DNA from: Phallusia mammillata
Lineage: Eukaryota
Assembly: GCA_965637545.1 (NCBI GenBank)
Contig: OZ281500.1
Span: forward strand, 23,560,001-23,624,000
Length of the DNA: 64,000 nucleotides
Direction of reading: 5' to 3'
Shown in pieces: positions 4,024 through 29,400 of the stretch. The position numbers and the translations under genes are program-made. How positions within the stretch are numbered: the stretch's first letter is position 1; every line of letters starts with the position of its first letter. Under the pieces are notes generated by a model that was not told the DNA's origin, did not search any database, and saw nothing but the letters and a program-made list of their open reading frames with translations.

Positions 4024-4039
4024 CTTATTCAAATAGAAG
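4024..4039 (-). other. Spliced-leader-like 16-mer (15/16 match to ATTCTATTTGAATAAG)
   Basis: Minus strand reads CTTCTATTTGAATAAG followed by AATCG, with no GT donor. Confidence 0.6.
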
Positions 4040-4641
4040 GCCGAATTTGATTGGCTGCTTCTATGTGGCTCGTCTAAATGCTGATTGCGATTTTTGTGCA
4101 AGCTCCGGAGCAGAAAAATTTGGACGATTTGCAGTTGGGAAGTTGGAAAATAAAGATAAGTTTTCTTTCACTGTCTGTCATACTTGAATATTTTTATGGA
4201 TGACAAATTTGGGTTTTGGAAGAGTTGACATACCCAATAACTCACGTATGTATTTCTCTAAGACAAAAGTTGTTTTTTGCAAAGCTGAATGTTAAAAGAT
4301 GTTGCTTACCAAAGTGTACCAAATATCGTATGTAAGTAGTTCTATAAAGTTCAATGGACACAATGCTTAGGTGCTTTTGTGCAAAGCTGAATTAAGATGG
4401 TGCAACAAAAAAAAACCTAACCAAATGCATTACAGTTGCACGGGCATCTCCATTAAACCAGACCGTTGAATTATTGATAACATGGCGAGACAGGAGCAAT
4501 TTCCATCTAACAGGGAGATCCTATGATAAGGTCACAAAAGTAAATACCTAAATGCATTCCTAATTAATTCCAAACTATCTATACTCAGTGACATAAAGCA
4601 GATGGTAGAATGCTCGGAATTTGAAACATCTTAGAATTTAG

Positions 4642-4859
4642 ATTGCAACAGTCAATGGCAACAACACGTTAAAACCAATTGTAAGTTCAAAGGCAATACG
4701 GCAAACTGGTTACGTGACTGAAGGTCTTCGTGACAAGTTAAACGTTTTACATAATCCAGACCTCTACAGTCTGTTTACTTTCACGTGGAAATACGTAGCG
4801 TTGTGCAAGAAAAAGAAGGCGAATGTAAAAACGTTATCATCGCAATCACGACAACACTT
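4642..4859 (+). CDS. Candidate exon(s) of the plus-strand gene: either 4642-4680 plus 4770-4859, or one 218-nt exon
   Basis: Acceptor atttag at 4641, donor gtaagt at 4681, acceptor cctctacag at 4769, donor gtgagt at 4860. The phase 0-0 reading gives IATVNGNNTLKPI / SVYFHVEIRSVVQEKEGECKNVIIAITTTL. Confidence 0.3.
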
Positions 4860-6096
4860 GTGAGTTTGTAAGACAACCACCCAAACCTCGCTACTTGAAG
4901 TTGTTTCAAGTCTGACCGCTGTGTACGACGTTACGCAGACACTAGTTAAGTGGAAAGGTTTAAATTTATCCTTGTTGGTAATGTTTGGATGATGGTCACG
5001 TGACAATATGCCACAATGCTTATGACGAAAGGTAAGCGAATTTTTGACCCGCAAAAGTGAACCAGAATTTTATAGACACAACAACAACGATTCCACTGTC
5101 GTTAATATCAAACTATTTTTGCGCATTTGCCGAACATATTCCCAACTTCAAGAAACCTTTCGTACGAAAAACAATAACTCCGTATCGAAACCACGAAGTT
5201 GTATCACAATAATGGCCACAATGGAGTTATACTCTGGTGTCAATCAACTGTCGTATGTTGCCAGTTTACACTCATGTTGTTCAGTGTTTTCAATGTAAGT
5301 ATTTGTAATCGACCGCGATAAGCCGAATACAATGGTGTCGCTGTTACGCTGCAGGTCAATGGGGTGATAAGCAACCACAGAAATTCGGCGAGTCTGCAAA
5401 ATGTTCACCGCATTTCTATAATGTTTGACTGACTGCGGTTTTGTTGGTTGTTGATCGAGTTCCGAATACACACTCGAAACAAAACCTAGCTTGTAATCAC
5501 ACGGCTACAAAACCGATCAGAAAACATTGTTTTCCTGTATTGCCAGGTGTGATGAGCTCATGGGTTGCTTAAAATACTTTTCATTATTTGTTGGCAAACT
5601 TGACATCGAGAATACAAAGTTCGCAATTCAAAGTTTGAAACTACACAAGCCATTTCCTACCTTGCTATACCACATCAAGATATTTAACTCCAACGTGTTT
5701 TTTTTTAACAGTCACACAAATTAAAGTAACAGGCTAAATAATAAGTATCTCGGATAGCACAACTGTTAAATAGATTAGCTACACAACTAACATATTTGTC
5801 ACTTAGTTTTACCTCATTTTTAACATCTAACTTTATAATAAAAAACAATAAGTCATTAATCAATAGACATCATGATCGTAGACAAAACCAATATAGGGCT
5901 TCATTTTCCTAACTTTATAAGTAGCTTGTTTGGTAAAGTTTAGATAAATGAGCATTGCACTTAAGCTCTAAATCACATCCTTATTTTACTCCTGTTATCA
6001 CATTGGGTTCCACAAAATTCGAAAGCAAAAACAAACACGTGGTCCTGACTGAAATAAATCTGCTTGCAACATTTACTCCACACGCAAACATATATA

Positions 6097-6192
6097 GGCA
6101 GACTTGTATAGGACGTCGAAACGTCGGAATAAAAAATACATTTGCAAGAAGAGCTCTATAAACTTGATATCATGCCTGGCAGCAATAGCTTG
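6097..6192 (+). mobile_element. 5'-truncated copy of hammerhead-bearing repeat family A (Penelope-like pLTR fragment)
   Basis: Near-identical to 37529-37625 (TGTATAGGACGTCGAAACGTCGGAATAAAA...GAGCTCTATAAACT...TGCCTGGCAGCAATAGCT) but lacks CTGATGA. Confidence 0.75.
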
Positions 6193-6324
6193 TATATATA
6201 GGCGGTACAGAACATTTCTACGAGGAATGTAACTTTCACTCACCAAGGGCTTGTCGAGCTTCATGTTGGCACATTTGTTGAGGACGTTCAGTCGTCTGTA
6301 AATAAATTCGAGACAATTAGATCT

Positions 6325-6392
6325 TAGAGTAGTCGGAAATATACACAAGAAGTGCAAGAGGTCACCGGTTCAAATCCCAAAGATTTTTTTAA
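6325..6392 (+). pseudogene. Degenerate tRNA-derived (SINE-like) fragment
   Basis: A-box-like TAGAGTAGTCGG, B-box GGTTCAAATCCC, then a T run. No cloverleaf. Confidence 0.4.
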
Positions 6393-6992
6393 GGCGGCCT
6401 AGTTTTGATAAATGTAAGATAAACTCCGACGTGCCAAAACGTTCCTTGCCGATAAAGGTTGGCTAGTTTGTTATTATAAAAAGTTTTGGGGCAAAGTAGC
6501 AATAATAGATCGGATAAAATAAACAAAACAGATAAAACCGCTTTGATGGCTTCAGCGTTTTTGTGTATTTTTTTGAATTAAATTTTGATGTGGTAATAAT
6601 ACCACCTAAAATAACGTAGACAATCGTAATATTGTGTTGACTTTTTGTTGTTTATAGATAAACTTGAAGTCATTTTTTTCTAAACACATCGATTTTTTGT
6701 GAACAAGTTGGAGCTTTTTAGTGTTTTTTAATTACTGGCGTTCGATTAAATGCCAGAATTAAAGCAAGCGTTATGCAACGGTTTTTGAGCCCAGTAGGAG
6801 TCAAAAGGCAGCTGCGATGTTATGTAACAAACCACGTGGCATAAGGGCAGGTGCAAGACTTGGTCAAATCCTATCAAGCGTTTCATATAAGTGGGCGAAT
6901 CGAACATCTGATTTTTTCTGGGAATTCACACAAGTTTCGAGAGCTTGTATATGGTAAAACATAAGGGTGGCAACACATGATTAGAGGTTGTA

Positions 6993-7142
6993 CATTGGTG
7001 GGATTCAACTGGTTCGCACCGGTTCTATAGAACAGTCTCACGAAATTTTATGAGATCTGCGAACCGGTTAGCATTACTGGTTACTGTCAATGAACTTTTT
7101 GTAACAGATCCGGCTGAAAAAATAAATTGAATCCCACCACTA
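6993..7142. mobile_element. hAT-type MITE
   Basis: Terminal inverted repeats CATTGGTGGGATTCAA / TTGAATCCCACCACTA; internal inverted GGTTCGCA / TGCGAACC. No TSD recognisable. Confidence 0.7.
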
Positions 7143-7843
7143 TACTATGTCCATCATATAACAAGCGAAATGTTATTGACGTATCAAACCATCATATCAC
7201 ACTCGCCTACCGAAATTTCTTGGCTGTCGTGCGTAACAATCGCACCAGTGACGTCATATTGGTTGTATGCTCAAAGCTTAGAATCAAAATTTTCAAGCAA
7301 ACACTTTGATTTGTTTTTGCAGCCCTGTATTTTTTGTAAAAGCTACTGTTAACATTTCTGAGAGTAATATATACAGAATATAAGACGAGGTTTAGAATGA
7401 ACCGGTTTAAATACAACATCATTTACAAGTCCTACAAGCTTTATTTATGACACTCTTCCTGATAAGAAAGCCCACCTAATGATTTTTACACTGTAGCTTT
7501 CAACTGTTTGGTTTAACACTTATGTTGACTGTATGAACTGTTCAAGCTATTTCGCCCTGTAATAAAACCAATTCTTAGCAGTAAAATGGGCAAAGATTTT
7601 GCCAGTTTTACACTTCTCTTAGTTTTTGCACACCTCCAAACCACCTTGCCCTATAATATTGACAAGAGTTAGTAAAATCTTTGTTGTTAATTGGGCACTG
7701 ATATTTTTAGTTTTACGATTTCTTAGTTTGTCACACACCACGAAACTACCTTGCGCTTTTTAGTGCCTTAATATTTATCCCAACTTGTTTAAACTGCTGC
7801 AATCCTTCTCAATGCCTCGAAGTCAAGTGGCAGTGTTCCTCAG

Positions 7844-8015
7844 TACCAACGTGTATTGGCCTGCAGTAAAATCAATGCCCCTATAAAGCTTAGCAGAGAT
7901 GAGGCTGGCTGGAATATTCCGTCAGGGACTTCGACATCGATTGAAGCATTGCGTAAACGGATAACGGACCTGGCCAATGTATTACAAGCAGAAACGACGC
8001 CCAGTTTTCCACATG
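7844..8015 (+). CDS. Candidate coding exon (YQRVLACSKINAPIKLSRDEAGWNIPSGTSTSIEALRKRITDLANVLQAETTPSFPH)
   Basis: Frame open 7794-8017; GC-richer than flanks; acceptor gttcctcag and donor CATG|gttagt (phase 0 to 1); coiled-coil-like segment. Confidence 0.45.
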
Positions 8016-8801
8016 GTTAGTCCAATTTCAAGTCAATGCGTGTTTTATCGATTGGGAATGTTGAAACAAGTCAAATGTAATGCATTGACACAGACAGAGG
8101 GAAATGGTTTTTGGTGCCAGATTTAAAATTTAGAAAAAGGGCTGAGCTTTTTGCGTTTAAGTAAATTAGTTTTTTTGAGTTTTTCTTCTTCTATGATTGC
8201 TAAACTATTTTTAAATTTTGGTTATTATAATTAATGTATTTTAAGTGCACAACTTGCATATACAAAGGTAGAACACTAGAGACAAACGCGGCTTTTGGTC
8301 CTAAAAACGACAATGGAAAGTAAGCCAAAATACTTGGGTGAAGCACTTAAATGTGTTGTTAACCAGTTTACCCACATTTTCCTAAAATAAGCAGCTTGGT
8401 ACACGAACTTGCAGCAATAAACCAAAGCGTATGATCGAATTCAAGTATCGTTGGCTGATCGGTTAAACTTACTTAAAAATTAGAAAGTTTGAGTCCCAAA
8501 AAAACAACATGTTTTTAAGAACGACTTCCGTTGTTTAAGCTCAGGGATTACGTAGAAAAATGCGGCAATAACACTTGCATTCTCTGCAATCCACGCAAAC
8601 GTTTTACATTCCATCACACCGCTGCAAGGCAATGACGCATAAAATGACGTTTTCCGAATAAAAGTTCGTGTGGTTCGTCCGCAAGGGAAGACAACTTAAG
8701 CTAAGTAAACCACATTTTCGCCTAAATACATTCGCAAATATCCCACAGGCACGTTCCACAACTTAGCGGTTAAATAACGGCAGCCAGGCATAAGAGCTAT
8801 A

Positions 8802-9085
8802 TGACGTCACGCAATGGAAATTCAATGCAATATTGATGTCCCTGCTAAATGGGGTAATTTAGGCGAGGTAAGTGGGGTAAAATAAAAGTAACCTGTTTCT
8901 TAAAAGGGGTGACGCACGTCGCGCATGATTGCACACAGAGCAAACAGTACCATGACGTCACGTGTGAATAGTTTATGACGTCATAGAAATGCAAATTATT
9001 TCCTTGCGAACATGCCGCGCGATTCGCACGAATGCAAAACGGACAAACACAATTGTGACGCCTCGGACAAAACTTTATGACGTCA
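8802..9085. promoter_or_regulatory. Cluster of four perfect TGACGTCA (CRE) palindromes
   Basis: TGACGTCA at 8802, 8953, 8976 and 9078, all preceded by A, in a CpG-rich block (about 8560-9320). Enhancer or repeat. Confidence 0.5.
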
Positions 9086-9445
9086 TAATCACATTTCGTC
9101 TCGCCAAAAAACGTGAGGGTCGCGATGGATTAGTTCTTTTTCCGGTTATCTAGTTGGGATCGTAAGCCGTTAACGAGCGGCTTTGCATGAAAGAAACCCT
9201 CACCATTTATTGTATTGTTTCTCGATTTGTTTGTCCAAATCGAAGTAAGGTCATACATAAAACGCAAGAATGTGATACGGTCAAATCGGAACACAACGTG
9301 ATCGCATCAACGCGTGGATTTTGTGCTGCTTATAAGTTTTGAATATCATGTAAATATGAGGTTGTGTTTATTCCCACGATAAAGTTGAACTGATGACAAA
9401 CAAATAAGGACAAAATAAATATTCTTGTCGATCAATGTTCTAACT

Positions 9446-9979
9446 CAGGGGTGTCCAACCTTTTGGACCGAAGGGCCACATGCGGTTTACGAATGATTGC
9501 GCGGGCCACTTGAGTGTTTACTGCTAATTTGTAATCTTAAAATGGCTGTCCATGTCCACTTTTCTTAGAATATTCTGTTAGCGTTACTTGCTTTTCGGTT
9601 CTTATTTGGCATAATCTACATCACTGCAGAGTGCTGAAGATATTTCACTGCTAAATGCTTTTTACGCGAGTCTCTGATATGATAACAGATGAACCTCAAT
9701 AAGGCAAGAAATATTTCTGACTGACTGACTCTTGAAGCAAGACATAACAATGCAGAAAATGTGATGCGTAACAATGTGTATTGTGACGTAATAAAAGTAA
9801 CTTGAACAGTCGTGTATTACTCTATTAACAAACAAATAAGGCAAACAATAAATGCCAATCCTCGGCATGTAAATCGCCATAAATTGGGCAGGCGTTAAAG
9901 TTCATAATATAAGTTATTTCGAAAAATACCGCGCGGGCCACTCAGAACGTTCCTGCGGGCCACGGGTTGGACACCCCTG
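9446..9979. mobile_element. hAT (Buster-type) MITE
   Basis: TIR CAGGGGTGTCCAACC / GGTTGGACACCCCTG; perfect 8-bp TSD TTCTAACT; subterminal GCGGGCCAC repeats. Confidence 0.92.
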
Positions 9980-12539
9980 TTCTAACTGAATCAGCTATCA
10001 GTTAACTTTATGTGAGGGTAAAGTGTTTAACATGTGACTGTTTTTTTTAGAAACGACAAAAAATGCTAACATATTCTGTCTATAATGTTTACACTCGCCT
10101 CTTTCGTATTTACAGGGCGTTAATTTAAACAAAGTGCTGAATTAATTGAAAAATTCCAAATTTTGCGCAACTCAGGTGTTTGAACAATTTGAAGCTTGTA
10201 ATATATTTTCGACATACACACACAAGGTCACTAAGGTCACACACAACCACATAATATCGAAAAAAGGCCCCACAGAATTCGTTTAAAGCATTGTTAACTG
10301 GCTGCTGTAAAATATTTCGGAGAGCATAAGGTCGCAAGTGAAAAGAGAACGAATCTAAGGTCGCAAAATCTAAACAAAGCTTGGAATGTCATGTCATAAA
10401 TATATCAGGCTTCATAAAATACAACAATGTTTGCAATAAGATTTATTGCATTCCATTTGCAATTGATCTATGGTGCTAATGTTACCTGGCACGAAATCCG
10501 TTTTATGTTGCGTGGCAGCCACTCCCACTAAGTTTTTAAACTTAATTTTATTATCTGATTCATGAAAAGGTTTGAAATCGCAAAAACGCCTGATGAGTTT
10601 TGCGGCACAAATCTAGCAACCCATATACATGGCTGATAGTCATTGACATTCATGCTGACCACCAACAACAACTCACAGATTGTGTACATTTTAAAACTCA
10701 CTACACGACAGAACAGACGAATCAAGTTTTTCGTCGTGGGTTCGAATCCCAAGGCAAACCAACTTTGCAGGCAGAAACCGGTCCAAAACGATTATTTTCC
10801 ATAAAGTCCGAATTAGGCCAAAAAGTTCGTTTTGCCAATGTGAAATTACAATACAAACGTTACCGATGTGTAAAGTCAGGGCCGAATTAAGCCCGCTTTT
10901 TTCAAACTTTTCCTGAACCCGGTCTAACTCTGAATGAGATCTGTTACTGTGTACATACCTCACTAGAGCTGCAAGTTGCATGTGTTCGTTGGCTAGGAAG
11001 TCATGGTCGGCACTCACACTGGTGATGTCCACAGGAAAACGACCAACTGCAAGTAAAGTAAAATTTCAATCTTATTAAACTTCTAAAAACGTATTGTTGG
11101 AATTCAAACATTGTGGTGTGTTGTTTTTACGAGAACCGGTCACAACAAGAGTTAAAATGTTTAAAAACAATTTATATTTTTAAGAAACAAACATCTCAAT
11201 GATTATTTTTATCGATTTTTGCAATATTTGCAATAAAGTTGCTTGTTAAATCAGCGATAAGTCTTTTCAATTCTATTGCGATTTAAAACATGAAGCGTTG
11301 TTATATTTTTAAAAGTCAAATCACCAGAAGCGGGATTAGAACCAAGAACTCTAAGCCTACATTACGTACACCAACATTGGGTAAAAGCAAATTTAGACAA
11401 ACTCATTACCTTCATAAAGATGCGCGTATTGGGGAAATCCGGCAGCTCTCAACCACTTGCATGCTTCCAATGCTTGGCGTTCTGAAATTCAAAACAATAC
11501 CAGGTTGTTAATGTGAAATCTAACCATATTAATTTAATGCCCCACAAAACAGAATTGCTTCAACGCATCTTCGGCGAAATCACACGGTGATGTTTTTCGA
11601 TATTCGTTTTGGATTTGAAATGTGATTGCATATTACTTAAGTAACACGTAATTTTCACTTTTGTGGGTATAGCCTCTTTGATGTGAGCCACAGAAAATAG
11701 CGGGCACGCCAGACATTCTGGTTATGTTTATGATGCTACAAAGAAGGAAAAGAATGCAAAGAAAAGAAAGAAATTGAGTACAAGACAAACAATTTCAACA
11801 CATAGTTTTGTTGTAATGAATATTCGAAGAACACTTTTGGGGGGACGAGAAAATAATCTTTGGAAACCCCAATACTTGGAAAAGAATCACAAACTGGCTA
11901 CCGCTCGAATAGACTTGAATTGCAAGTAGGGATCAAACATATTCTGCCCAACCCCAAAATATCCTTAAAACCTTCCGTCCATTCACCGACAAAACAACAC
12001 AGTTTCTCTATTTCTAATAACTACAGGGTGGATCAAAAAATTCACAGAATTCCGTTTAAAACGATGCCAAAATTTTCCCGATTTCCGCAAGTGAAAGTCA
12101 GCAAGGCCGCTCCCATCAGCCCAACCTATTACTATTCGTTCAATCTTACTGACATGTGAAATCGAGCTTTGTATGGGAAAGACCTTTGAAGCCCGACTAG
12201 CTATAAATAGCACTTTCATCTTACGATGGCAGGTCGGCAAGTTTGTTGCATTCTAGCGGAAAATTTGAATCAGAAAAAGTGCGCAGTGTTCATATGACAT
12301 AATAATCCTACAAATGTTTTCATGAAACAAAAACAGTTTTTTTTAGTTACTCGATCCTACATAGGAAATGTGTGTTCAAATCGATTGATTCTGTCTATTG
12401 AAAACAAAAGCATTTGAAGGTTTTAGACCCAAAATAGTTGTAATTGCACAAGTCAGCATTGTGTAAAATTTTTCATCAAATCAACAAATTTAGTTAAAAA
12501 CTCTTATTAAAAAAAATTAAAAATCACTTTGTGTCATGC

Positions 12540-12610
12540 ACATGTGCGGCCCGCGATCCAATTTTCACATTTACAATTGGCCCTACAGTAACAAAGGTTG
12601 CCCACCCCTG
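12540..12610. mobile_element. End fragment of a hAT MITE
   Basis: Ends in AAGGTTGCCCACCCCTG, the same TIR as 56953-57240, with GCGGCCCGCG upstream. Confidence 0.6.
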
Positions 12611-15600
12611 CCGTAAACCAATCAAAGATTTATCACAAATTTTAGTGTTAACTGTGCAGCAATATAACTACAGCCATTAAAATAGGTCGAAGACTTGAGC
12701 GCCCAATGAGGCTTCATTTAAACGCTGCTATTTCGGACACTGGCGCCGCAATTTCGAGACATTTAATGTTTTGTGAAAGTGGTCAGGCGTTGAAGCAGCA
12801 GGAGTGCCTTGTATCCCGCAAGGTTCAACATTAGGCCCACTAAAGATTAGGTGACAGCGGGAATTGTGGTCGGTCGTCTCGTGGAAGAATAATTACGGCG
12901 CATGAATCCTGCTGGGATGTTTCTTGATTTGTGACTCGTCGTTTTGTTTGGAAAAATATGAACAGAAAAAAGAAATGTTGGAGGTGGACGTGGTTGGTCA
13001 CGTGATAAAAACGTAGCTGTCGTCAGATGCTTGAAAACCACTTTTCTTTGATTGGTAGGCAAATAAAAAAACGGAATGAAACGAGAAATAAACATTTATT
13101 ATGATGATTGTTTTTTGCTTGTTATTGTGCTGACTTCGGTTTAGCTTTCAACAGTGCAAATTAAATTTCCCTGAAACGGTTTCAAATCTGCGATTTATTT
13201 CCTGCAGTGCCAAAACAAGACCAACAAAAAATCTTGCATGTTCTTCAAGCACTAGACATAACAAGATACAACTACTGATGTTTGTTACGTCATACTTCAC
13301 ATAAACAAAGATCTTTATCGCCATTGAAACGACGTTTTAAGAGCTCAAAACCTGTTTAGGCGCTCTTTTATCAACAAACCGAAAGTTATCAAAACGCATC
13401 AGGTGGCACAATAAGTCACGTTTGATGCTTGTTTTCACTTGTTGTCACACCTTTGTGTTGCAAACGCCATTAGGTGCTCATTAACCGATGTGAGGATAAG
13501 CAATCCGCAGTACTAAGCAAGCAAGATATGCCACAAAAACGTACGAAAAACAAAAAGGTTTTGTTCAAAATTTGGCACGATCTTTCTTCGGCCTACACGG
13601 GGAGAAATCAAACTAAAGGAGTTTCTCAATAATTGAAACACTTCGTTCAATTTGACACAGCACTGTAATTAGACAGCTATGTTCTCCACAGAGTCTCAGA
13701 GAAAGGAGAGCCAGGTCCAACCAACGCAACCGCCGACCAATAGTCTCGTGTTTTTGGTTCTTAAGTATTATAAGTGTTTTAGCCTTGAGATCAAAAACCC
13801 AGTCAATCACTCAGACAACGCCTTCGCCCCCCGGTCGAATTCCAATGTCAAGTTTAAGTGCATTCAATACGTCATAATGGGTATGACGTAACTTAAGGTA
13901 CGGCCATTACACATGCCGATGACGCCGAAAGACAAACATGCTCAAATAAGCCTAGAATCACTCAGTAGGAATCAATTGTTTTAATCACAATAGGTGAGAA
14001 AGTTGTATAGCTCAAGGAATTTGGAAAGTTGTGATTCCAAACATGGGATTGGACTTAAATATTTGCTCTAAATAGCTTTCCCTATTTCAATGCGTCGCGG
14101 ACGTTTTAGACAACCATTAATTGAAGGTCATGTGTTCTCAAAGCAGGGATGGGCAAACGCAAGGGGCGGACTGAACAAGCAATGGAAAGGTTCAACGACC
14201 TCAAGCGAGACGCGTGCGACCCCTCACCCTTTGTTGTGTGATGGAAGAGTGCGCGATGAGAGAAGAATTGCAAACAACTTGGGTGGTTTTGAGTGTAGGG
14301 CAACGACAAATGAATATTTTGAATACACACTTTTGTAAACACTCCAAAAAAGTTGTGTGCCATAGAATATTTACCTATTTACAGTTTATGGCACCGTTTT
14401 GATAACAAGAAGATTTTAAAAATGCGAAATAAGAAAACATCACAACTTGCACTCCGTTGGCTCAAGGTACGGTTTCTTGAATACAGTCTTCACTACCCCT
14501 CAAAAGCACCAATACTTCAATTAAACATAATACCATTGATACCACAAAATTATAACTTTTATGCTTATTCTTTTGTATTTGAGAAAAAAACATTGCGCAT
14601 TTTTACTTTAAAAAGCGGTCCTGCCCAAATCTATTGCATCGTAATTGGCCCGCGCCACATGGCAAGAAGAAGTTGAAACAGAAAAATATTGTTAGTAATA
14701 TGAACGACATACTGCTTTAAAGTGTAATAATTTTGAAACATTTACAGCTTTAGGAAAGCAATGCAGACAAACTTACATCAGGCAAATTTCAAACAACAAC
14801 AAACCAATTTGCTTCACAATTTGTCTCTGTTGCATCACAATGAACTATCTAAGATAAAAAGTACGCAAAAGAAAAAGTGTTGTTGTTTACTGATAGTCCA
14901 CGTGCTTGGCTTTGTAGAAGCCGATGTCAACAACAAGTAAGGTGTGCCAGAAGTCAGTGAAGTGGCACTAACCGGGAGAAAACACGCAGACTTCTGAGAC
15001 AAGTCATTCAGTCAACTGAGATCACACAAAATCCACCGCTTAGATCTTGCGGGTTTAAAAGGAACCGGGAGGGGATGAGTAGGAAAGAGGAAAACAAAAA
15101 ATCTCAGGGATTCGTTATCTTGGTCACGTTTCTGGTTGGAAACAGGTAATGACTAACGCTTTTGGGAGAGTATAGTTAGAAACAACGCGTTGCATCTGCA
15201 AGGTAGGGTCGAACAGTCATCTCCAAATTGGTGTAATTTCATCAGCAAAATATCTGACTCAATTTGACATCACGTATTACAGCTTAACCTACAACAAAGT
15301 TACCATTGAACCCCTTTTTATTGAGACTTTTTCCCAACAAAACAGGGATAAAAAAGGTGAAACAAACAACTCAACTTGGTTTACAACAACATAATAATAG
15401 TTAAGAACAGTAAGTAGGGTTTAAAGCCGGTAAAACTACCCATTTTTTGGCTGCAAATAAGTTTTGGCCGAAATAGCGCAGGCAATTTTCTGCTCCGGGG
15501 GTCTCAGCACGCTTCGTAGGTGCATTAAGTTCTCAACATGGGCTATATTTAGACGTTAACTACTAGGATTAGAATCGCCTAGAAACGTGGCTTTAGAACG

Positions 15601-16633
15601 GAGATTTTTCGTGATAAACTCAACTTAATGGAAGGTTTAAGACTCCGTGACATAGAACGGATCTTTTAGGGTAAAAAGCTCCTTGATGTGTTCATGACAC
15701 AAACACACAGTGACGAACTTAAAGGGGAATATTTTTGGTTGATCGTCATAAGTTTGGCCGTAAATTGATAAAACTGACCGCATTTTAAATCTGCAACGAT
15801 AATCTTAGAAGTAAAAATTTCAAAGTGGTTTTAGACTAAAACACATGTAAGTTTTATATTGTGAGTTTTTAGAACCGTCAAATTGTGTGTTCAAGTTTCT
15901 CAGTATCTAGAAAAATGTCGCACTTTTACTACCTACAGCGTGGCATTGAAACTTAACACCAAAAACGTGAGCCACAACATCTGAAATATGCCGCATGGAA
16001 ATGTCACGAAAAAGATGGGAGTGTTCCCGGATAACTCATAGCAAGAAAACGTATTTCCGTGCAGTTAAGTGCTTTAAGATCCACCAAAATGATAAAGCAG
16101 GACAGGGTTGCATAGAAACGCATCGTTCATGTAAGTATTATCGTTCATTTCTCCACGCCAGTCATAAGATGGGACTCACGTAAAATTTGCACTTGGTTCT
16201 ATGTTATGAGGAAAGCTTCAATGGAAACACGTTTTTATCTCGCACTTCTTTACAAACAATGAACTTGATCAAAACATCAGATTACACATTGCGCGTGCAA
16301 GGTGGTCTATGATGTCACCTTTGGTAAACGTCTACTACATATAAAAGACAACTAAAAAGGATAAGACTTTAAGATCATTGTCAGAGTTCGTCTGTTGTAA
16401 ACACTACGTAATTATCAAAACCTGAATCATTGTCTATCATAAAACAAAACCAAGATATTTCATCAAGAATACGACATCGTTTCACATAAACACTATTAAA
16501 GAAAACCAACAACAAATTACTAATTTTTTTTCAATTACTTAAATGCAAAAACGCGTTTGCAAGAAACAAAATAATCAATGCAAACACCTTGGATATATGG
16601 AAATATTTTGCCCAAAAATGTCATCGTCAAATC

Positions 16634-16649
16634 CTTATTCAAATAGAAT
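16634..16649 (-). other. Exact ascidian (Ciona-type) spliced-leader 16-mer
   Basis: Minus strand ATTCTATTTGAATAAG (16/16), followed by GATTTGACGATGAC and an Sm-like ATTTTTGG. No GT donor. Confidence 0.8.
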
Positions 16650-18919: not shown

Positions 18920-19100
18920 AAAGACCACGTGACCAAAAAGCAAGCGGGGAAATCCCTTTACGTCACGGTCCCACCAGCTAGCCGATTGAGAGTTTGCAGA
19001 GATTGAATGGAAACCGGAAGGTCAAAACCGAGCAGCTGTTCACCGAGGCTATTTTGGCGGGACACTGAATGCGACACGTGACTGCCACGTGACCGACAAA
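18920..19100. promoter_or_regulatory. Promoter-like cluster: three CACGTGAC E-boxes plus an E2F-like site
   Basis: CACGTG at 18926, 19075 and 19086, each followed by AC; TTTTGGCGGGA near 19052; CCGGAAG at about 19007. Confidence 0.5.
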
Positions 19101-19265
19101 ATGTGACCCTGTTTACGCGCAAATTTGACGTAATTTTATGTACGCGGGTATTTTGATGCATAAATGAAGCCATTTAAGGTCAACGAAATCTGTGTGGCTT
19201 AGGGGGAAATCAAATGTTTTAAAAATCGTCAAACACCCAGTTTCAAGCTCAATTGATAACCTGCC

Positions 19266-19298
19266 CTGATGATGACAACAGCTATTGGTTAAAACGTC
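19266..19298 (+). ncRNA. Degenerate minimal hammerhead motif (family C)
   Basis: CTGATGA-T-GACAA-cagcta-TTGGTT-AAAAC-GTC: G12 changed to A, stem II imperfect; TGC/GCA stem-I remnant; AATAAA downstream. Confidence 0.55.
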
Positions 19299-19667
19299 TG
19301 CAAGATGTATTCAAAATAAACAAGTATTCAAAAACCATAAATATCGTAGATTCTCTATCGACAGTTTTGGGCCTAAAACATACTTACACATTTCTTAGCC
19401 TTTTTTACGCTGGAAAAATATTGTTGTGCACACACATGCGGCCAAGTGCACAGAACATACAAAAGTATGAGGGACAGACAAATAGAACACTAACAAATTA
19501 ACACAGGAAGATGGCAGTCAATCCTACAGTGCTAAAACACTATTGTATTGAGTGAAAAAACGCCGGTACAATATTACTGAGTTTAAATATAACTATACTG
19601 TATCGGTATCTAGCGTGACGATGTTTAAATTAACTTCAGTTTTAATTTAACGCCTTATTGTTTCCAG

Positions 19668-19764
19668 AAGTTAAACCAGAAGGAAGAAGTTCATCAATTA
19701 TGGTTGATTTTCTACCTTGGAGGAAAAGACAACAGCTCAACACAGGAAGGCAGTGATGCAAAAG
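19668..19764 (+). CDS. Candidate coding exon (KLNQKEEVHQLWLIFYLGGKDNSSTQEGSDAK)
   Basis: Acceptor ccttattgtttccag, donor AAAG|gtattt, phase 0 to 1, open frame. Confidence 0.45.
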
Positions 19765-20230
19765 GTATTTACAAACCGACAACAACTTAACGTGACAAGA
19801 AGCAAACTTCTTCATCCTGTCCCATGAAGTCACCAACATATCTAACATGATCAACAATATATGTAAGAGTTACTGGACGCAGTTTCGCAGCTGATTGGGT
19901 GATGTAAGTCACGTGGTGCTTACAAGGTGTTGACGGTTTTAAAACCAGGTGGTATGTCAGGATTTTAACGATGTACAAAAGGACATTTTTTTTGTAAAAT
20001 TACAAATTGTTTTTGACAGTCCGAATTTTAGAAACGTACACAAAAGCGAAGTGTTTGACTTCATAAAAATTTGTTGTCGCAAATGGCTACTATTTTTTTT
20101 TCACGGGACGAAACTTTTACACCAGCAAGGTTACAATTTTGAACCGTTAGTAACACTCAATGAGTTTTGCATAACGCTCCAAATAAAACTCGTCGTATGT
20201 TGTATATAGTTGACGCAACAAACAATAAAT

Positions 20231-20246
20231 ATTCTATTTGAATAAG
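20231..20246 (+). other. Exact ascidian (Ciona-type) spliced-leader 16-mer
   Basis: ATTCTATTTGAATAAG (16/16) followed by GAACTGCATGTGTCATTT. No GT donor. Confidence 0.8.
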
Positions 20247-20504
20247 GAACTGCATGTGTCATTTAAGCGAAATAGAAATTCCTTTACCAAAATAAGACTG
20301 ATCCTCCTTAACCAAGGATTTTTTCGTCACTTGTTACTAGACGCAACATTTGAATGCCAACAAATGCGCAATGATTGTTGCACAACACTCTTACAAACCG
20401 TGAACAGCCGTATATCGTATTTAATTGACGCAAGGTTTGGAATGGCATGTGACGTAGATACGCGTGACAGGATGGTCTAAACTTTGCTCTCTAATCGGGT
20501 TAAG

Positions 20505-20710
20505 AGCGCTACAGTGGCGGATTAAGCGAGTCTGACGATGCCGAGATAACTAAGAGATGCGTCATAGAAATCACGAAAACGCAGCTCGGCTCGGGATCAC
20601 CACGCAAGTTACGTTTTCCCGGTGAAACCAACGTAGGCGTGTTGAAGGTGTTTATACCACGCGGCAATTCTCAATCAAACATAGTCAAAGATCCGGCTGA
20701 TAAGACTTAA
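20505..20710 (+). CDS. Candidate terminal exon (RYSGGLSESDDAEITKRCVIEITKTQLGSGSPRKLRFPGETNVGVLKVFIPRGNSQSNIVKDPADKT*)
   Basis: 67 open codons to TAA at 20708-10; AATAAA at 20752; phase-1 start matches the 19764 donor, but the acceptor (ttaag) is weak. Confidence 0.4.
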
Positions 20711-21687
20711 GAGGAACTATGTTGCATGACCTGTTCTAGCGCCCCAAGCTTAATAAAGCACAGTTGTTTTACATGAATGTTAAATAACCTTGTGTTGCCA
20801 ATCAGTTCGTATTTGACTCATAGTTGAATTACGTTTACGGGTGACTTAAAAAACTCGTTAATTTACCTAATAGATGTTAAACCAAGAATTGAGATATTTC
20901 TCAAAAGATAAAAAATCAGTTTCCTGATTTGGTCCGTACTGTTTTGCAAGGCCATTTACGCACGCTAGTACTATAATGTTGACCAGGTCAATAAGTAGCA
21001 ACTTTTCTAGAATAGTTTTCTGCAACAGTTTTGCCAAAATTAAAAAGTAAAATTGTATCTCATATAAGTGACCAAGGAGTAAACGAGGCAAAAAAGATTG
21101 ATAGTTCTGGTTTATCACAATTCTCACAAGTGCAATGTTTATAAAGTGATGGATGAATCTAGCAGGCCTTTCTCAATCAGACACGTCGAAAAGATTGTGC
21201 AGATAAGGTTGAAACGCCTACGCCGTCTGAGCAAACGTTGCACACCGGTCTACTGCGGTTCCACGTACAGGGAAGAGCCCGAACTCAGACGTATACGTCA
21301 CCTAGCACGTGACCTTTGCATTTTGGCGCGCTGTTGCGTAAAATATCTGGCCAGCGAGGTGATGATTTCATTGTTAACGTGACACGCGTTGGTTTAGAAG
21401 TTTGAGTAAGAAAATGGTATGCCAAAAATTGAAACAGTCACAAGTAAAAATAAGGAAAAAGAACAGTTTTTTTACAGCTGGAAAATTTATCAGTATTGCC
21501 TACACCCCTACCAAACGTGCAACTTTCATTCCAGTACCCAAACTTGGAAAACAAACCTAAAAGACAACCCATCCAGCTTTGTTAATCCTTACCTAATTTC
21601 TATATTGATTATTCTGACTAACATGGTGACAACATACACCTAAAAATCATTTTCCAAAACCATCTAACATTACCAGAGCGAACTTAC

Positions 21688-22299
21688 GAAGATCTGATTG
21701 GTTTTCCATTAGTTTCCGCATAAAAACATCCCACGAAAATCGAATCGAGTCTCCCCACATAGTGATAGGGGAGCGGTGATGATCACCACCAAGGAGGACA
21801 GCGCTCTGAACCAGACGTCTTCTCTTCTTCTGTGATCCCTTTCTCTTCTTCTTAAACTCCGCACCCTCCGGAGGAGAGAAGAGCGGATTGAGGTCCTCCA
21901 CTGATGGAAGCATCTGAGTCCTGCCTCCGTGTAATCCTTTAAGATTCATTTCACTTGCACTATACGCAAGCTCTTTATATTTTTCATCCCAAATCGAGTC
22001 TTCTGTGACCCGAGAAACATCGCAAGACATTGGACGTCGAACTGGTCTCGGTTTTGCGAGGTTTGTACGAAGTTGGACAGGTTTTGTTGGAGAGAAGACA
22101 TCACTGGATGAATTGGAGATCCCACGTCTATTTGCCAACTCTCCTGCTCCGAAGAAGATGTTGCTTGAGCTGTCCTTGCGAGGAAGACGGAATGATGCAG
22201 GACGCGGGGGTTTAGAAGTCCGGCGTTTGTGAGTCGGTGACTGGCTGACACTTCTGTTTAACGTGGGCCGAGACATGCTTAAATTGGGCTCCACTTGAT
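21688..22299 (-). CDS. Exon of the large minus-strand gene; Ser/Pro/Arg-rich with a basic NLS-like cluster (KKKRKGSQKKRRRL)
   Basis: 226-aa ORF 21647-22327 with coding-like composition. Acceptor ttcatcgtcag (22300) and donor C|gtaagt (21687) give a 612-nt phase 1-1 exon. Alternatively it starts at ATG 22327 or ends at stop 21647. Confidence 0.85.
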
Positions 22300-23942
22300 C
22301 TGACGATGAAGTACTGGGTAACTTCATTCAACAAGTTTTAAGTAAATGTCAGTTCAACTAAGATTGCACGTTTTTGTAAACTTTCCAATTAACGGTCCAC
22401 AGTTGTTTAGAGAAGACAGTTTCAGGTCACATAGCATGTGTTCAGGTAAGAATTCCTAACAGTTACACAAAATTCGAACTGATTCCTTGCACTTGTCAGC
22501 TGTAAGTTGTTGTAAGTGAGTTAGTGCCAAATAATATTCTTTCTGTAGAGAATTGCCTTCTGGTCGTACATTATATATAGCTGTCAGCTACTTCTAGCTC
22601 TAAATTTCTCTTTGTAAAGACCCACAGTAATTTTACTCTGGATATCAAAGAAAACGATGTTATTTCAAGGCTGCCACGTCGTTAAAAACGAGCTTGCAAT
22701 GCTAATTTATAACCCAAAAGAAACAAATGCGCGTTCTAAACTTCACATGCCTGCAGCAAAAAGCCTTAAGACAGTAAGCAATTGTAACCTTTTATATAGT
22801 CTGCGTGCAGCAAATACCACGAGCACTAAGCCATAGGTATGTGCGGTGCGAGACAATGCTATCATCTCCTTTATATATTGAACTAATAAGCAATTAGCCA
22901 CGTGCCAGGCGTGATTGCAACACTGACAATTTCCCCAGGGACGTCTCTCTACTCTCTAGTAACTGTGAAACTATAAAATATGGGTAGAGAGATTTGGTTT
23001 AACAGTGACTTTTGCTATACGCTCCTGTCGAGATTGTATCAAAACCCATATCAACACAAAGAAAAGTTTCGGTGTTAAGCACCAATTTTACCCTAATGTA
23101 CCAACAAACAACATACAAATTCATGATAAGTTGAAATGTAGAAATACTGATGTTGGTTAAACATTACAAGTGCAGTGTTATGTGAAAGAATTTATTGGCA
23201 GAAAAGATTCGTTCATTTACAAACGATTTCATACTTATTTGCTTTTTACAGCCCTTAGTGAGGTAACAAATACGCTTGTCAAGGGTTCAGATAAAAGGTT
23301 TTCGCAACGTGTATAGCTATCATAAGGTTGGCACGTCACATGACGTTACGTAATATATGGAAAGTGGAAAATATTTCCAAACAACCTTTGTGTGATTGAC
23401 AATAATTTCTACACAGTAACTACAAGTTTTTAGAAGGAAAACGCACTTCTTTACTAAAATTCTAATAGAATAAGATCTTACATAGACTGACGATGCTTAT
23501 TCATGTAAAATATACATCTTCATTTGAAACTTTTTTCAATTATTGCCTTTTGTTATTACTTTATGACCAGTTAATATGGCCTTATTAAATTATGGGTTGC
23601 GTTAAGTGGAGTAATGCGTGATACAACCAAGCACATTAAGTACTAACTTCAAAAACAAACAATTGAATATTTCAAGACCCAAGAACGTCAATCCAAAAAT
23701 AGCCACCCTTTAGCCCTTGTTGTGTTATTGTGCAACGTGTAAGCTTGGGGTAGTGCAAACTACTGGCAAACGTACACAAGCTAGCTAAGCAGCCTGGCAT
23801 AGTCACAACAGCATAAGGATGCAATGGCGTCTATCCTCAATTCATTCCTGTGCATATCACCAAACGACACGTTTCCTCTGCCTATAACGCGCGGAAATTA
23901 TAAATCAAGCAAGCGCCCGATGACGTTAGGCGTAACATAATA

Positions 23943-24116
23943 TGACCGACCACAACAAAATGATGACTGTAATTAAAGCAAACCTAAGATATGTCGAAAT
24001 TTAACGCAAACAAAGTTTAACATTGAATTTGACCGACCACAACAAAATGATGACTGTAATTAAAGCAAACCCAAGATATGTCGAAATTTTAACCAAACAA
24101 AGTTTAACATTGGATT
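23943..24116. repeat. Tandem duplication, 87-nt period, two copies
   Basis: TGACCGACCACAACAAAATGATGACTG... begins at 23943 and again at 24030. Confidence 0.92.
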
Positions 24117-24401
24117 TTTTCAGGCATTATCATGTTAAAGTAAACTTAAACTCAGTCAAAAGTGCGAAAAACTAGGACGAATCTATGATGGACTACGATT
24201 AGGAGTTGATCGTTAAAATTTTTTAATAAACGACCTACATTAAAACGGAGCAAAACACAAAATTGGATTCTTTAGGCAAATCTTTCTAATCAGTTTAAAA
24301 TTTTGAAGTGATTTTTACCAGTATAGTCGAAAATTAGTAAAAGATAACTAGAAGTTAATGTCACTGAAAACTTTGAAATTTAAACCGTACAAAATTTAAT
24401 T

Positions 24402-24497
24402 TGGATGATAAGCTGCAATTGGATGCTTATGCAATTTTGGATGTGATGCTTATGCAACTTTTATTTTACATTAATTTGGATGCTTATGCAACTTTTA
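24402..24497. repeat. Degenerate short tandem repeat (GGATGCTTATGCAA, 3-4 copies)
   Basis: Read directly. Confidence 0.75.
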
Positions 24498-26324
24498 TAT
24501 CGTGGTAAATGGCAATAACAAAAGCGAATTTTAGTAGCACATAAGACGTTTGCTTTCTAAAAGGTTGTTTAAATTTTATCATCGGTTATCTGGTTCTTGG
24601 CAAAGATGTCCATGACCAAGTATTCAATCATGTCACGCAAAACGCAGTGGACACACGAAGTTTGCAAAGTTGCTCTCGGTCACTACTGGGTGACCGCTGC
24701 AACAGAGTTCAAGCTACTGCTGTCAGTTGTGGTAGGTTATTTTTAAGTCGCGACAACTTTCATGAATGGTATATCACGACGAAAAGGTTTGCGCTTAGTC
24801 GACCTCGTCTGTAACGTCACAAAGAGCAACAACACAAACATGATGACAACACAATGGTTTGAGAACAACAAACATTGTTGTCATTGTTTTTTTAGAACAG
24901 CGAAACTGTTTATGTCCTGCTCTGCACGTAGTCACGCCTTTTGAGTGGATATTAGATCAACGACGCATGTTATATGGACTGGTCTATTGGGATGATCGGT
25001 TCTTAATGAGGAAACATACCAAAGCTAAGCGATGACGATGGTGGAAAATATAGACCAGATTCTATAAATTTTGAAAACCACGTGGTTGAACCGGCGTATT
25101 ACCACTTTAGCAAGAAATAAGCTTCGACTATTTTTTACGGATGAAAAGCACTGACTTAAAAGAGTAGCGTAATTAACAGCAAAATTGGTACTTGCAGCGA
25201 TGCGTAGTTCAATCACCTGAGGGATCACCACTGTTGCAAAAAACACTAGGATATTACAACGTTTGAATAAGAAAATGGCCACGTTTTAAGGCCGAATTAC
25301 TTTTCGTAAGTAATTTTAGTTTTGTTATGAAAGCTACTTTGTTCAAAACACTAAAAACTAAAACATTGATACACGAAACTTTTCACGCAACCTGGTATCC
25401 TTGGCACCATAAATGACCACGTTTAAAGTCACTTCTTTGATAGCTTTGTCTCTTTTTGAAACTACCTTGTTCAAAAACTAACATATTCCTTCACGCAACA
25501 TCGTATCCTATATAGACACTGTAAACACTTCAAATAGGCAATAGAACCCTAGAAATCACCTTGTTAAAATATAAAACATACTTACACTAAACACAAGATG
25601 AAATAAGTTATGCAAAAACATGCCAGACCTTTTAACACACAAACACACTGAAACACCACATGACTGCAAGCTCCTAACTCACTTGGCTTCGTTCCAGCAC
25701 CTTGCCTCCTAAACAGGCACTAGTCTGCCCAATAAGTTACAATACTGCAGAACAAGTATAATTCAGAAGCACAAAAATTAAGCAAGCCTACAGATCCTTC
25801 CTTACAGCCGTGCACTCATAACTTGTATAATACGGCCTTATACTGTCAAAGCATGTACAGTGTATAGACCAGTATATAGAGCATAGTAACAGACATGCAC
25901 TATAGTAGGGAAGCCTGGTCTGCTGCTGAGCACTGCAGAGGATGTAACCCTGCCCGTATGCGTGCAGTGACGAAACAGTTTCCGTTATTGCAACAAAGGA
26001 AAGGGGGGGATCTCACTCTTACACACAGGCACGGCACCGCGTTGTTGTCGTTTGTGATAAAACAATGAAAGCCCCATATGATATGGAAGAGTAATTGACC
26101 CTGTACGCACGTGATAATAACGTGGCGTCAAACTGGTTGGATTTGGAAGTAAGACGAAGTAAAGAAGAAAAAAAGTAACTATTGGAAAATTTATCCTTGG
26201 GATTGCGAAGCAATTATTTCAAAGAAGTTGTCGAAATGTGTGAGCAGAATTTTGAAATTCAGAAGCGGAATAAAAACCTACAAATTCTAAAGTATGTGTT
26301 TGAACGTGTTCAAGGTGTCATAAC

Positions 26325-26418
26325 CTGCAATGCATGGCGGTGCTGGCATCATGCGACAGCGTTTAACGTTGTAACCACATGTCTCAGTTCCATCATTTGC
26401 ACGCAACCGATATAAACG
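26325..26418 (-). CDS. Candidate linking exon of the large gene (RLYRLRANDGTETCGYNVKRCRMMPAPPCIA)
   Basis: gtgtttag| ... GCAG|gttatg; phase 0 to 1, which joins the phase-0 end at 30314 to the phase-1 start at 22299. Confidence 0.45.
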
Positions 26419-29400
26419 CTAAACACTCACTCGGCAAGCCTAACTGTCCCTTACCCCACATAGTATTGGGAAAATCCCATAAAAACTTGTTTAAAAATAA
26501 AAAAAATCTTGATCCCAGACAAAACTTAAAAGACATTTAACAAAAAAAGCACATTTACAAAATTTAACAAACGTCAATCTGTTGCAATATATCGACAGGA
26601 ACAACAAAACATGTTTTTTTGCAAAATATCATTTTAAACTCAATATTGCCATCTTGTGGCCGAATAAATCTTCACAATTTTCCTCGAGTACATGCTTTGG
26701 ACTGGAAGTTATCACAATTCTTTTACTACAAACTAATCTCACCTGCAACTTTGGTTTCTTTGTCTCGAAGACCCTGTGAAAGCAAAAACATGAAATGGTC
26801 AGTTAGGCAGATGGCTGACAATGTACAATGCATAATCTAGTTTAGGTCTATACATAGACATAGATCGATTTTTAACAGTACCGTGTGTTATGTCTCATTA
26901 GGATACGTTAGACTTAAGTAAAACAATAACGCACACGTTGCAAGGCTTTGACATTGACATTAAAGTTGGTCAGAGCTGATTTAGAATCTTAATGACCTCA
27001 GGACGTCGGTTCATTGTAAATGACCCTTTGCAGAATGTTGTGTTAACAAATTTTTAAACACGAATGTTGCTTATGATCAGAATCAGTCAGCACGAATCAA
27101 TTATTATTGGCATTATAGGTTTCTAATTCAAATAGAACCTCCTTTGTTTCACAAACTTGCGTATTACGATGTTGCATAACCAAGAGAGATAATTGGGGCC
27201 ACATTTTGACATCGACAATCGAGCGGTCGATGGCAGCAATAAATAGTGCGGTCAGCGACAGGAAATAGTTTGTTTGGCAATAAACTGAAGCATTCCATGA
27301 TCGGCATGTGAAAACGCATGTGGTCCCTTTTTAGTGCACAACGTAAAACATTTAAAAGATAAAATACTATAAGCATGGAAAATAGTCATACAAATATATA
27401 TTTCGTACAATACTGCATTTTATGATTGCTGATGTAACAATATGAGATTTTTAACTAAACCTAAAATTTAGGCTTGAATTCAAAAGGTATAAGCACGAAA
27501 CGAAACAAAAACCGAATCTGAACATTGTTTAAGGCCCACATGTAATCTATATCAGATGCGCAAATTTGGCATACAGGTCTACATAAATATCTATGGAATG
27601 TACGGTCGTACGCAACGAATCAATATGTACCCTGTAAATACGCGCATTCCGCGCAAAGAAAGTAAAAGTGCGACGCAAATGTTGCAGGATACAGGCAATT
27701 TTTTGTTCAAAAAAAACTATAATAAGTCCGAACCCGAAGGAAAAGCTTGAGATACTCGTCAAAAAGCGCCAATAAATGTGAGCCAAAAAGTTTTTTTTTA
27801 TTTATTTTACCATTACAAAGTTGGGAGCAACCTGTAAAAACTTTGGAGGCAAAGAATTCAACCAAAACACTTTAAACAAATGAATAAATTAACTATTGGC
27901 AAAAAAGGAGTTTATTAACAATGGCCATTAGGACACATATCGGAAAGCGAAACAACTGTTTATCGTCCATTAAAAACTAACTTCCGAAACCCAGTGACCC
28001 GATGACCTGACCGGCAGTTAAAATAGGAGGCTGTTTGTTTGGTCATAAACATTACGAGAATTCCAGATCCGCTTTGCAGAATTGCAGTGTCGTTTCTGCA
28101 CGCGTGCCTTGGATTGAGCAATGTTATAGAAGCATGTTAACATGTTGTTAGCTGTATATCGGTCGTCGTGGTGGTCGATATGTTTGCATGTAGCTTGTTA
28201 CATCTTATTAACATGCGTCTGTACATAAATCCGCAACTAAACAAGCCGTAAAGAAGGATATAGAATGTAAAATATGCCCCCTGCTGTATTTATTATTTTG
28301 AACTATATCGTGTTTGAATATAGTGTTGTTGAATATAGTATAGTAAATTTCATAAACTATCAATCAGGGATATTTGACTTATTCGACGTTGTCCCATTCG
28401 GGGCGTTTTTGTCAGGGTAATGTCAGCTACCCAACACAATCGTTCTTATAACACCACACACAAAAAAGCTATAGCAAAATTAAAAACATATTTGGACTGT
28501 AGCAATAAGAAATCATGTATAACTTATATAAGGGTTATTTTGGTTTGGCAAAAATAGTTAACTCTAGATCACAAAACTGATTCAAATATCTCGTATCAAA
28601 AAATAAGGTTGACATATTTGAGAACTAACGAGCTCTTGTGGCAGGCATCGCACTTTAATTGCAGCGCACACAAAATCGTGAAGTCGAAATGGCACAAGAC
28701 CCACAATGTAATTTACTCCCAGTGTTACACTCGCCACGCCCTTATGTCCACCAGGTAAACCTAGATATCAACCACAGCCATCTTCAGCAATCAAGTCTTA
28801 ATCTCGTGCAAACAAATCCATACTACCGAGTTTTTAAGGTCTGTTTTCAAGCTCTTATTTTCAGTTATTCCGGTTGTTGTGTTTGTGTTTGCTACTTGCG
28901 TCATATGCGAAATTTTAACTATAGGCTTTTTACAGGGCACGTTTAACCAAAACTTATTTATAGTTTAAATTTAAATTTGCCTTTCAAAAAAAATATGCTG
29001 CACCATAAAAAACAACATCAAACAACTTCAACACGAGCACACCAAAATAGTTTTTCTTGTATAACTTACGCCCTAAACCTACAGACGAAGTGTTTTAGCA
29101 GCGTCCTTAACGTACTTTGTACTGTTGAATGAGTTGCGCTTCAAAAATATACATGTAAACAGCATTTGGATATTACCGAAAAGTACGGGAAAAAATTACA
29201 AACATAATCCACAGGGAGGCATTCAACACTTTGTCAACAGGAAAAACAAACGACCGGCTAGATTATCTCACAACTCTTATCTTCAAAGCTTAATTCAAAA
29301 CACATTAATCAGTCAACAGCGCAGTTGAGCAAACAATTTTATCGGGTTCGCGTAGTGTGAAATGCCCGGTAAACTGACAAGATAGAGAACACAACTTACT

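Follow-up and report, generated by a model that had tools for sequence, protein, structure and literature searches.

What are copies of a spliced leader (SL), a sequence that trans-splicing adds to RNA, doing in genomic DNA away from the SL RNA gene? The question is raised by a stretch of 64,000 nucleotides of the ascidian Phallusia mammillata (the window; positions 23,560,001 to 23,624,000 of OZ281500.1, contig 7 of a 240-Mb assembly), in which an initial annotation, made from the letters alone, had picked out orphan copies of the 16-nt leader ATTCTATTTGAATAAG. We consider it likely that the window leaders are mostly the 5' ends of retrocopies of a short trans-spliced RNA from a Penelope-like element (PLE), namely its 3' tail, which comprises a putative hammerhead ribozyme and a tail of about 55 nt. 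At one and the same junction, the copies of this element with open reading frames (ORFs) have a splice acceptor and hundreds of short copies have the 16-nt leader; trans-splicing of the leader onto that acceptor is what we infer.

The host leader and its dispersed copies

The initial annotation had proposed that the 16-mer be counted genome-wide against a control. There are 3,860 exact copies of ATTCTATTTGAATAAG in the genome and none of the reversed control, and 4,869 against 51 when one mismatch is allowed. Among the exact copies, 3,179 have GT next, and the majority of these form a 553-bp tandem array on contig 3, in which GTAAGCATCATACTCCTCGGAGTAAC and a run of T come after the leader. This array is the real SL RNA gene, and P. 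mammillata uses this leader, as the initial annotation had supposed while allowing that the species might turn out to have a different one.

About 1,000 one-mismatch copies and the roughly 680 exact ones that lack GT are dispersed. We inspected the first 100 dispersed exact copies, which represent 91 distinct loci; the work as a whole is based on about 160 short loci (labelled L below) rather than on the whole genome, and the family counts are lower bounds. The 91 loci are mixed, with a few resembling the SL RNA gene, some carrying tandem truncated leaders, several small families with downstream sequences of their own, and a PLE-tail group. In this last, large group the leader is followed by three variable bases, then by CTGATGATGCC and a short loop, next by either GGCGAAAT or GGCAAAAT, and finally by ATATATTCC and some 55 further conserved bases; both exact copies in the window belong to it.

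Leader copies in the window

All four leader matches of the initial annotation (two exact, one with one mismatch and one with two) were reproduced by our search of the window at up to two mismatches, which added a fifth that it had overlooked, 23459-23474(+), also with two mismatches.

20231..20246, + strand: exact 16-nt leader, the likely 5' head of a retrocopy; upstream DNA unlike that of other copies
16634..16649, − strand: exact 16-nt leader, the likely 5' head of a second, older retrocopy
27123..27138, − strand: leader relic, 14 of 16 bases (A1 to G, T at position 14)
23459..23474, + strand: leader-like 16-mer, 14 of 16 bases, 11 nt (not 3) ahead of the hammerhead core; real or a chance match, uncertain
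4024..4039, − strand: leader relic, 15 of 16 bases (A1 to C), then unique DNA; unclassified

In 100 dinucleotide shuffles of the window the mean was 0.10 matches at this threshold and none reached five, which bears out the earlier statement that the matches are not due to chance. None of the five leaders is followed by the GT donor, also as previously described. Contig 1 has 86 dispersed exact leaders in 36 Mb (about 2.4 per Mb, or 0.15 per 64 kb), and two exact copies in the window are only a mild local excess (Poisson p ~0.01). An ATG lies 7–24 nt from each window leader, and no ORF longer than 38 aa is found downstream of any of the five. The commonest leader variant genome-wide is loss of A1, and the copies at 4024 and 27123 are of this kind.

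A Penelope-like element with a splice acceptor at the junction

A pattern made from the non-leader downstream part alone finds 16 places in the genome. At 8 of the 16, a pyrimidine tract and CAG stand directly ahead of GAACTGATGATG, and at 4 of the 16 the leader or a decayed leader stands there, so either a splice acceptor or the leader can stand at this junction. Acceptor-type junctions read ..ttacag/GAACTGATGA.. (the slash marks the junction), with a pyrimidine tract and with the CAG in the 5' strand of hammerhead helix I, and the junction is always 3 nt ahead of CTGATGA.

At least 285 places in the genome are candidate relatives of the 100 nt past the junction; the 40 that were scored are 90–100% identical and are frequently arranged as inverted pairs, ends facing outward. 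ORFs just upstream of two of the tails (L067 and L068) match GIY-YIG, and at one locus (L163) there are two ORFs in inverted orientation, 783 and 682 aa long, that have both RVT_1 and GIY-YIG, each followed by about 270 untranslated nucleotides and then by ..ttacag/GAACTGATGATGCC.. or ..ttacag/GAACTGATGATGCCACATAGGCGAAATATATATTCCTTC..; the RVT_1 scores are weak, under the Pfam cut-off. Because ORFs with a reverse transcriptase (RT) and GIY-YIG at the C terminus precede the same tail, its source is, by predicted domain architecture, a PLE retrotransposon. The inverted, 5'-truncated arms fit this assignment, as they are a known insertion structure of PLEs (PMC8557442). We rejected a DNA transposon with long terminal inverted repeats (TIRs), since the inverted pairs enclose RT and GIY-YIG ORFs. 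Most leader-headed copies have no inverted partner within 1.5 kb.

The hammerhead was read by hand. Helix I pairs (A/C)AGGAA with UUCCU(U), and the core CUGAUGA comes with one extra U; helix II is GCC/GGC with a 5-nt loop, and GAAA is accompanied by a 1-bp helix III with the palindromic loop UAUA and by U and A at positions 16.1 and 17. Minimal PLE hammerheads have an extra base past A9, a G10.1–C11.1 pair and a palindromic loop (PMC4209133), and when read against this descriptor three loci (L163, L086 and L089) have all core bases and the extra base past A9. The tails are likely to carry a minimal PLE hammerhead ribozyme. Where a leader heads the copy, its final three bases (AAG) stand in for CAG and lengthen helix I to six pairs. 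As Drosophila virilis Penelope has a spliceosomal intron whose 3' end falls at the 5' end of helix I (PMC4209133), an acceptor at this spot would be an old PLE trait. A C/D-box snoRNA, as which CTGATGA .. CTGA could also be read, was dropped given the hammerhead and PLE context; Rfam returned no snoRNA match.

Two further observations concern the tails. At L067, L163, L080 and L087 the tail extends about 90 nt more (AAAGTTAAAAAGGCAAACAGTGATCG..), and other copies end at ..TTTTACTGT; the run-on may be the variable 30–40-bp 'extension' of PLEs or the head of a tandem unit. On contig 7 at about 2.969 Mb, an intact ORF of 286 aa with a strong galactose-3-O-sulfotransferase match (L164:511-1368, − strand; E=6e-75) adjoins an acceptor-type PLE tail.

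Evidence that the leader entered through RNA

Of the 91 orphan exact-leader loci, 17 match the tail profile, with the base just past the leader in register, and 5' of the leader the copies have unrelated sequences. A tree of 50 tails requires nine changes of the leader/acceptor label, at least three of them forced by well-supported branches: two leader-headed tails (L007 and L090) cluster with two acceptor-type ones (L066 and L069), and another leader-headed tail (L086) clusters with an ORF-bearing arm of L163. Leader and acceptor are intermixed on the tree, which argues that the leader was gained repeatedly, in different subfamilies.

The 5' edge of the copies points the same way. A G precedes the leader at 51 of the 91 loci (56%, versus 17% in the background; p=3e-17) and at 27 of the 57 with unrelated upstream DNA (p=1e-7); the base at this position in the real SL RNA gene is C. 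An extra 5' G is a trace of a reverse-transcribed cap. Among one-mismatch copies, for which mismatch positions were taken from a separate pattern search, 316 of 1,009 differ at leader base 1, where 6% would be expected (about five times an even share), an excess that fits ragged 5' ends of cDNA.

Insertion structures are shared with the ORF-bearing copies. Of 33 leader-headed tails, 8 have an inverted copy of the same tail within 60 nt upstream (none of 200 shuffles in each case), and at L007 and L109 both arms open with the leader; the inverted pairs at L067/L068 and L163 bear ORFs. Further, run X1 has a 53-nt contig in which, by alignment to an acceptor-type copy, leader bases 2–16 are joined to GAACTGATG exactly at the acceptor, at greater depth than the element body. 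We take this contig as support for, not proof of, a joined RNA.

Element tails at the window leaders

The initial annotation had described the flanks of the window leaders as differing, which is true upstream; downstream, four of the five have a common decayed element.

20247..20339, + strand: PLE tail, in register at the trans-splice junction and reaching the 3' end of the element (nhmmer tail profile E=1.5e-10 and 1.3e-10; pairwise z=12.7)
20212..20220, + strand: target-site duplication, left 9 bp, GACGCAACA; a 10-nt filler (20221-20230) separates it from the leader
20340..20348, + strand: target-site duplication, right 9 bp, GACGCAACA; abuts the 3' end of the tail
16556..16633, − strand: decayed PLE tail, about 78 nt long and internally deleted (pairwise z=6.6, 0 of 200 shuffles as high; nhmmer E=0.009, in register)
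27013..27122, − strand: probable, much-decayed PLE tail of the L007/L069 subfamily, with ..CTGACTGATTCTG.. in common (pairwise z=3.1, 3 of 200 shuffles as high; weak)
23486..23582, + strand: decayed PLE tail, ACTGACGATGC.. AAAATATACAT.. TTCATTTGAAAC (pairwise z=3.9, 1 of 200 shuffles as high)

The 93-nt tail at 20231 retains a decayed hammerhead (CTGCATG.. GCGAAAT.. TTCCTTT), and this copy has 26 relatives in the genome, at 75–92% identity, nearly all of which start at the leader. The tail ends with ..TTGTTACTA right at the target duplication, without an A run, so the 3' poly(A) tail that defines processed pseudogenes of the LINE type is lacking. The earlier suggestion to look for target-site duplications and A tails is thereby answered in part, with the 9-bp duplication at 20231, none at 16634 and no A tail. 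Three genome relatives of the 16634 copy start at the leader, and its 'Sm-like' stretch ACATTTTTGGG, 16605-16632(−), aligns with hammerhead helix II and loop of relatives and is not an SL RNA Sm site. BLAST of the flanks at 23459 and 27123 against the whole genome found no relatives, self only.

Neither exact copy in the window has an inverted, 5'-truncated arm. The two lie head to head, 3.6 kb apart, and their tails are about 67% alike; because the tails are no more alike than that and 20231 has a duplication of its own, we regard them, without certainty, as separate events. The window would then hold two retrocopies with intact leaders (20231+ and 16634−) and probably two decayed ones (23459+ and 27123−). 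No window copy is functional now, since the hammerhead cores are broken (CTGCATG at 20250, GACGATGAC at 16625) and ORFs are absent. Folding of the window copies as RNA gave stability no greater than that of shuffles, and a Pfam search of the ORFs at 21650-22327 returned nothing.

The leader at 4024 stands apart. With 51 control copies against 4,869 in the genome at up to one mismatch, a copy of this type is about 95% likely to be a real relic, and very probably is one. The 1.6 kb downstream has no second copy (BLAST against the whole genome, self only), ORFs of the region have no Pfam match, and the likeness to the element tail is not significant (pairwise z=1.9). We suggest a leader-headed retrocopy of a template not identified.

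Weighing the explanations

The 16-mer could instead be an inherited internal part of a repeat, be it a miniature inverted-repeat transposable element (MITE), a long-TIR transposon or one PLE subfamily, spread at the DNA level or by ordinary copying and with no trans-splicing at each origin. The outward-facing inverted pairs of tails would suit such a repeat, as would the similar arrangement of the two exact window copies, and some inheritance is possible given that the closest relatives of 20231 nearly all bear the leader. The inverted pairs, however, enclose RT and GIY-YIG ORFs, which makes them PLE arms rather than TIRs, and a leader inherited with its repeat sits badly with unrelated upstream DNA, with at least three forced leader/acceptor changes on the tree and with window tails only about 67% alike, whereas the G at −1 and the pile-up of base-1 variants are features of RNA 5' ends. 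We find this account unlikely. The MITE that the initial annotation had itself raised as a possible source of the 16-mer gives way to a retroelement tail in which the SL replaces the upstream sequence.

Retroposed host mRNAs bearing the leader, that is, processed retrogenes in the dinoflagellate style, would account for the ATG near each window leader, for the 4024 copy in unique DNA with no link to a repeat, and for tandem leader relics (L004–L006 and L150) like those of dinoflagellates. But no window copy is followed by an ORF of more than 38 aa or has a poly(A) tail, no parent gene was found for 4024 by genome BLAST or by Pfam on its ORFs, and the ATGATG past the leaders belongs to the hammerhead core, CUGAUGA and a following UG, rather than to a start-codon context; we hold a host-mRNA origin to be highly unlikely. 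The initial annotation had named relics of SL-capped mRNAs, and its retroposed, SL-capped RNA stands, with the PLE 3' tail in place of a host mRNA; the SL-headed mobile element that it listed separately was essentially right and is one and the same thing. Its third proposal, scattered SL RNA pseudogenes (or variant genes), fails for the window copies and as a general account is extremely improbable. PMC7986045, with reference to Yeats et al. (2010), describes SL RNA 'pseudogenes' as plentiful in Ciona, and three of our dispersed leaders (L035, L052 and L100) continue with GTAAGCATA.. as in the real gene and are, by this continuation, true SL RNA pseudogenes or variants; the Sm-like stretch after the 16634 leader might be added to these. 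In the window, by contrast, GT follows none of the five leaders, 57 to 298 of 500 shuffles score as well as the flanks do against the 60 nt after the real-gene leader, so there is no likeness to the SL RNA intron half, and the Sm-like stretch falls on helix II and its loop.

Several results weigh against the retrocopied, trans-spliced PLE tail that we prefer. The 4024 copy is unexplained by that tail, the assignments of 27123 and 23459 to it are weak, the duplication is missing at 16634, and a search for target duplications at 21 copies gave a clear one for 20231 only. The head-to-head spacing of 3.6 kb is somewhat unlikely for independent events, and the two copies may once have been a single two-armed insertion. 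Rfam hammerhead models found no match on 26 loci (the only matches were microRNA-like and came from inverted arms), the ribozyme call is a hand reading against a published minimal descriptor, and in the commonest young subfamily G12 is replaced by A; Rfam's silence and this A are why we call the ribozyme only likely. The RNA evidence is one short assembled contig from a run that is RNA only by guess, and transcribed leader-headed DNA copies would yield an identical contig. Some leader-headed copies may also descend from leader-headed parents rather than from fresh trans-splicing.

Other leader-bearing families

Four loci on contigs 1 and 2 (L004, L005, L006 and L150) have a full leader followed by one or two truncated ones (for example, TCTATTTGAATAAG, then ACATTCTATGTGAATAA), within a repeat family whose upstream sequence is conserved. 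Tandem relics of this dinoflagellate kind suggest repeated rounds of trans-splicing and retroposition. At L054–L058 (contig 2, 8.52–8.68 Mb), and also at L059 and L060, the leader and GTGCTGATGAAG are internal to a 2–3-kb repeat that is conserved on either side of the leader. A conserved TGTTTATTAAT..TGTTTATG motif stands ahead of the leader at L001, L124, L149 and L151 (also L132, L148 and L022), where the downstream sequence varies; it may reflect either a preferred target or another element's end. Five loci (L026, L111, L112, L144 and L152) form a leader-headed family that continues with ACTTCTTGAAACATTTCTGTCGCTGATAACC. The window itself has another hammerhead-bearing repeat at 37490-37630 (CCTGATGAAGG .. 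GTCGAAACGTC), with four window copies by the count of the initial annotation; it is unmatched by the tail profile and so belongs to another family.

Proposed mechanism and implications

In the mechanism that we propose, the PLE transcript would have no donor upstream of the helix I acceptor, and the host would trans-splice its leader onto that acceptor, producing a short capped RNA of leader, hammerhead and tail. Because this RNA would keep the 3' end of the element, the PLE reverse transcriptase could copy it into new sites, with insertion often leaving an inverted, 5'-truncated second arm and with the cap sometimes copied as an extra G. More tentatively, trans-splicing at helix I might be a regular PLE step in hosts with spliced leaders, in which the leader provides a cap and extends helix I from 5 to 6 bp (AAGGAA/UUCCUU) and the RNA of about 100 nt is a favoured template; we think this broader proposal possible but doubtful.

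On this broader proposal, RNA processing would make a SINE-like parasite that has no gene of its own, and orphan leaders would be a genome-wide record of the templates of the PLE reverse transcriptase. If the mechanism itself holds, leader relics would provide a built-in marker of full-length, capped PLE templates in a family whose copying mechanism is poorly understood, and would link the long-noted helix I acceptor to host trans-splicing. Leader relics in DNA, known from dinoflagellate retroposition, would here be found in a chordate relative, tagging transposon RNA rather than host genes. The same process would account for many of the scattered 'SL RNA pseudogenes' that get in the way when SL genes and trans-splice sites are sought in ascidian genomes. 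As genomic leaders can mimic trans-spliced reads in RNA-seq mapping, masking them is advised.

What would be new is a host leader spliced onto a transposon's hammerhead acceptor, with the short product retrotransposed in numbers. Full-text literature searches, which did not cover Yeats et al. (2010), found no paper that joins a spliced leader with Penelope or a hammerhead in a relevant way. The initial annotation knew of no description of such copies in tunicates; this holds for leader copies on PLE tails, on which we found no paper, and is too broad in that Ciona SL RNA 'pseudogenes' are mentioned (PMC7986045).

Comparison with known systems

The nearest precedent for leaders in DNA lies outside animals. 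Slamovits and Keeling reportedly described, in 2008, retroposed dinoflagellate genes with spliced-leader relics at their 5' ends. There, as here, a leader that is added only to RNA turns up in the DNA, exactly where a retrocopy has its 5' edge, and tandem truncated relics occur (here at L004–L006 and L150). The dinoflagellate templates, however, are host mRNAs that become genes, whereas the main recognizable template here is a non-coding transposon tail of about 100 nt, copied by the transposon's enzyme, in an animal.

Known hammerhead PLEs (PMC4209133, PMC8557442) share with the Phallusia element an ORF with RT and C-terminal GIY-YIG and the inverted, 5'-truncated arms. Read by hand, its putative hammerhead agrees with their minimal ones in an extra base between 9 and 10.1, in the G10.1–C11.1 pair and in the palindromic loop of a 1-bp helix III, and D. 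virilis Penelope, too, has a splice acceptor where helix I starts on its 5' side. The Penelope acceptor serves a cis intron, whereas here it would take the host leader, and the tail-sized product would itself be retrotransposed in large numbers; the papers searched make no mention of trans-splicing.

The Ciona SL RNA pseudogenes mentioned in PMC7986045 resemble the present case in that many 16-mers are dispersed outside the functional tandem repeat. Those copies were reportedly filed as pseudogenes of the SL RNA gene, in contrast to the copies here, which are without the SL RNA intron half and are joined to a transposon at a splice acceptor. Full-length LINE-1 insertions and processed pseudogenes have a non-templated G just before the first transcribed base, taken as a reverse-transcribed cap. 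In Phallusia the G precedes a trans-spliced leader, and a cap copied there would be the leader's own.

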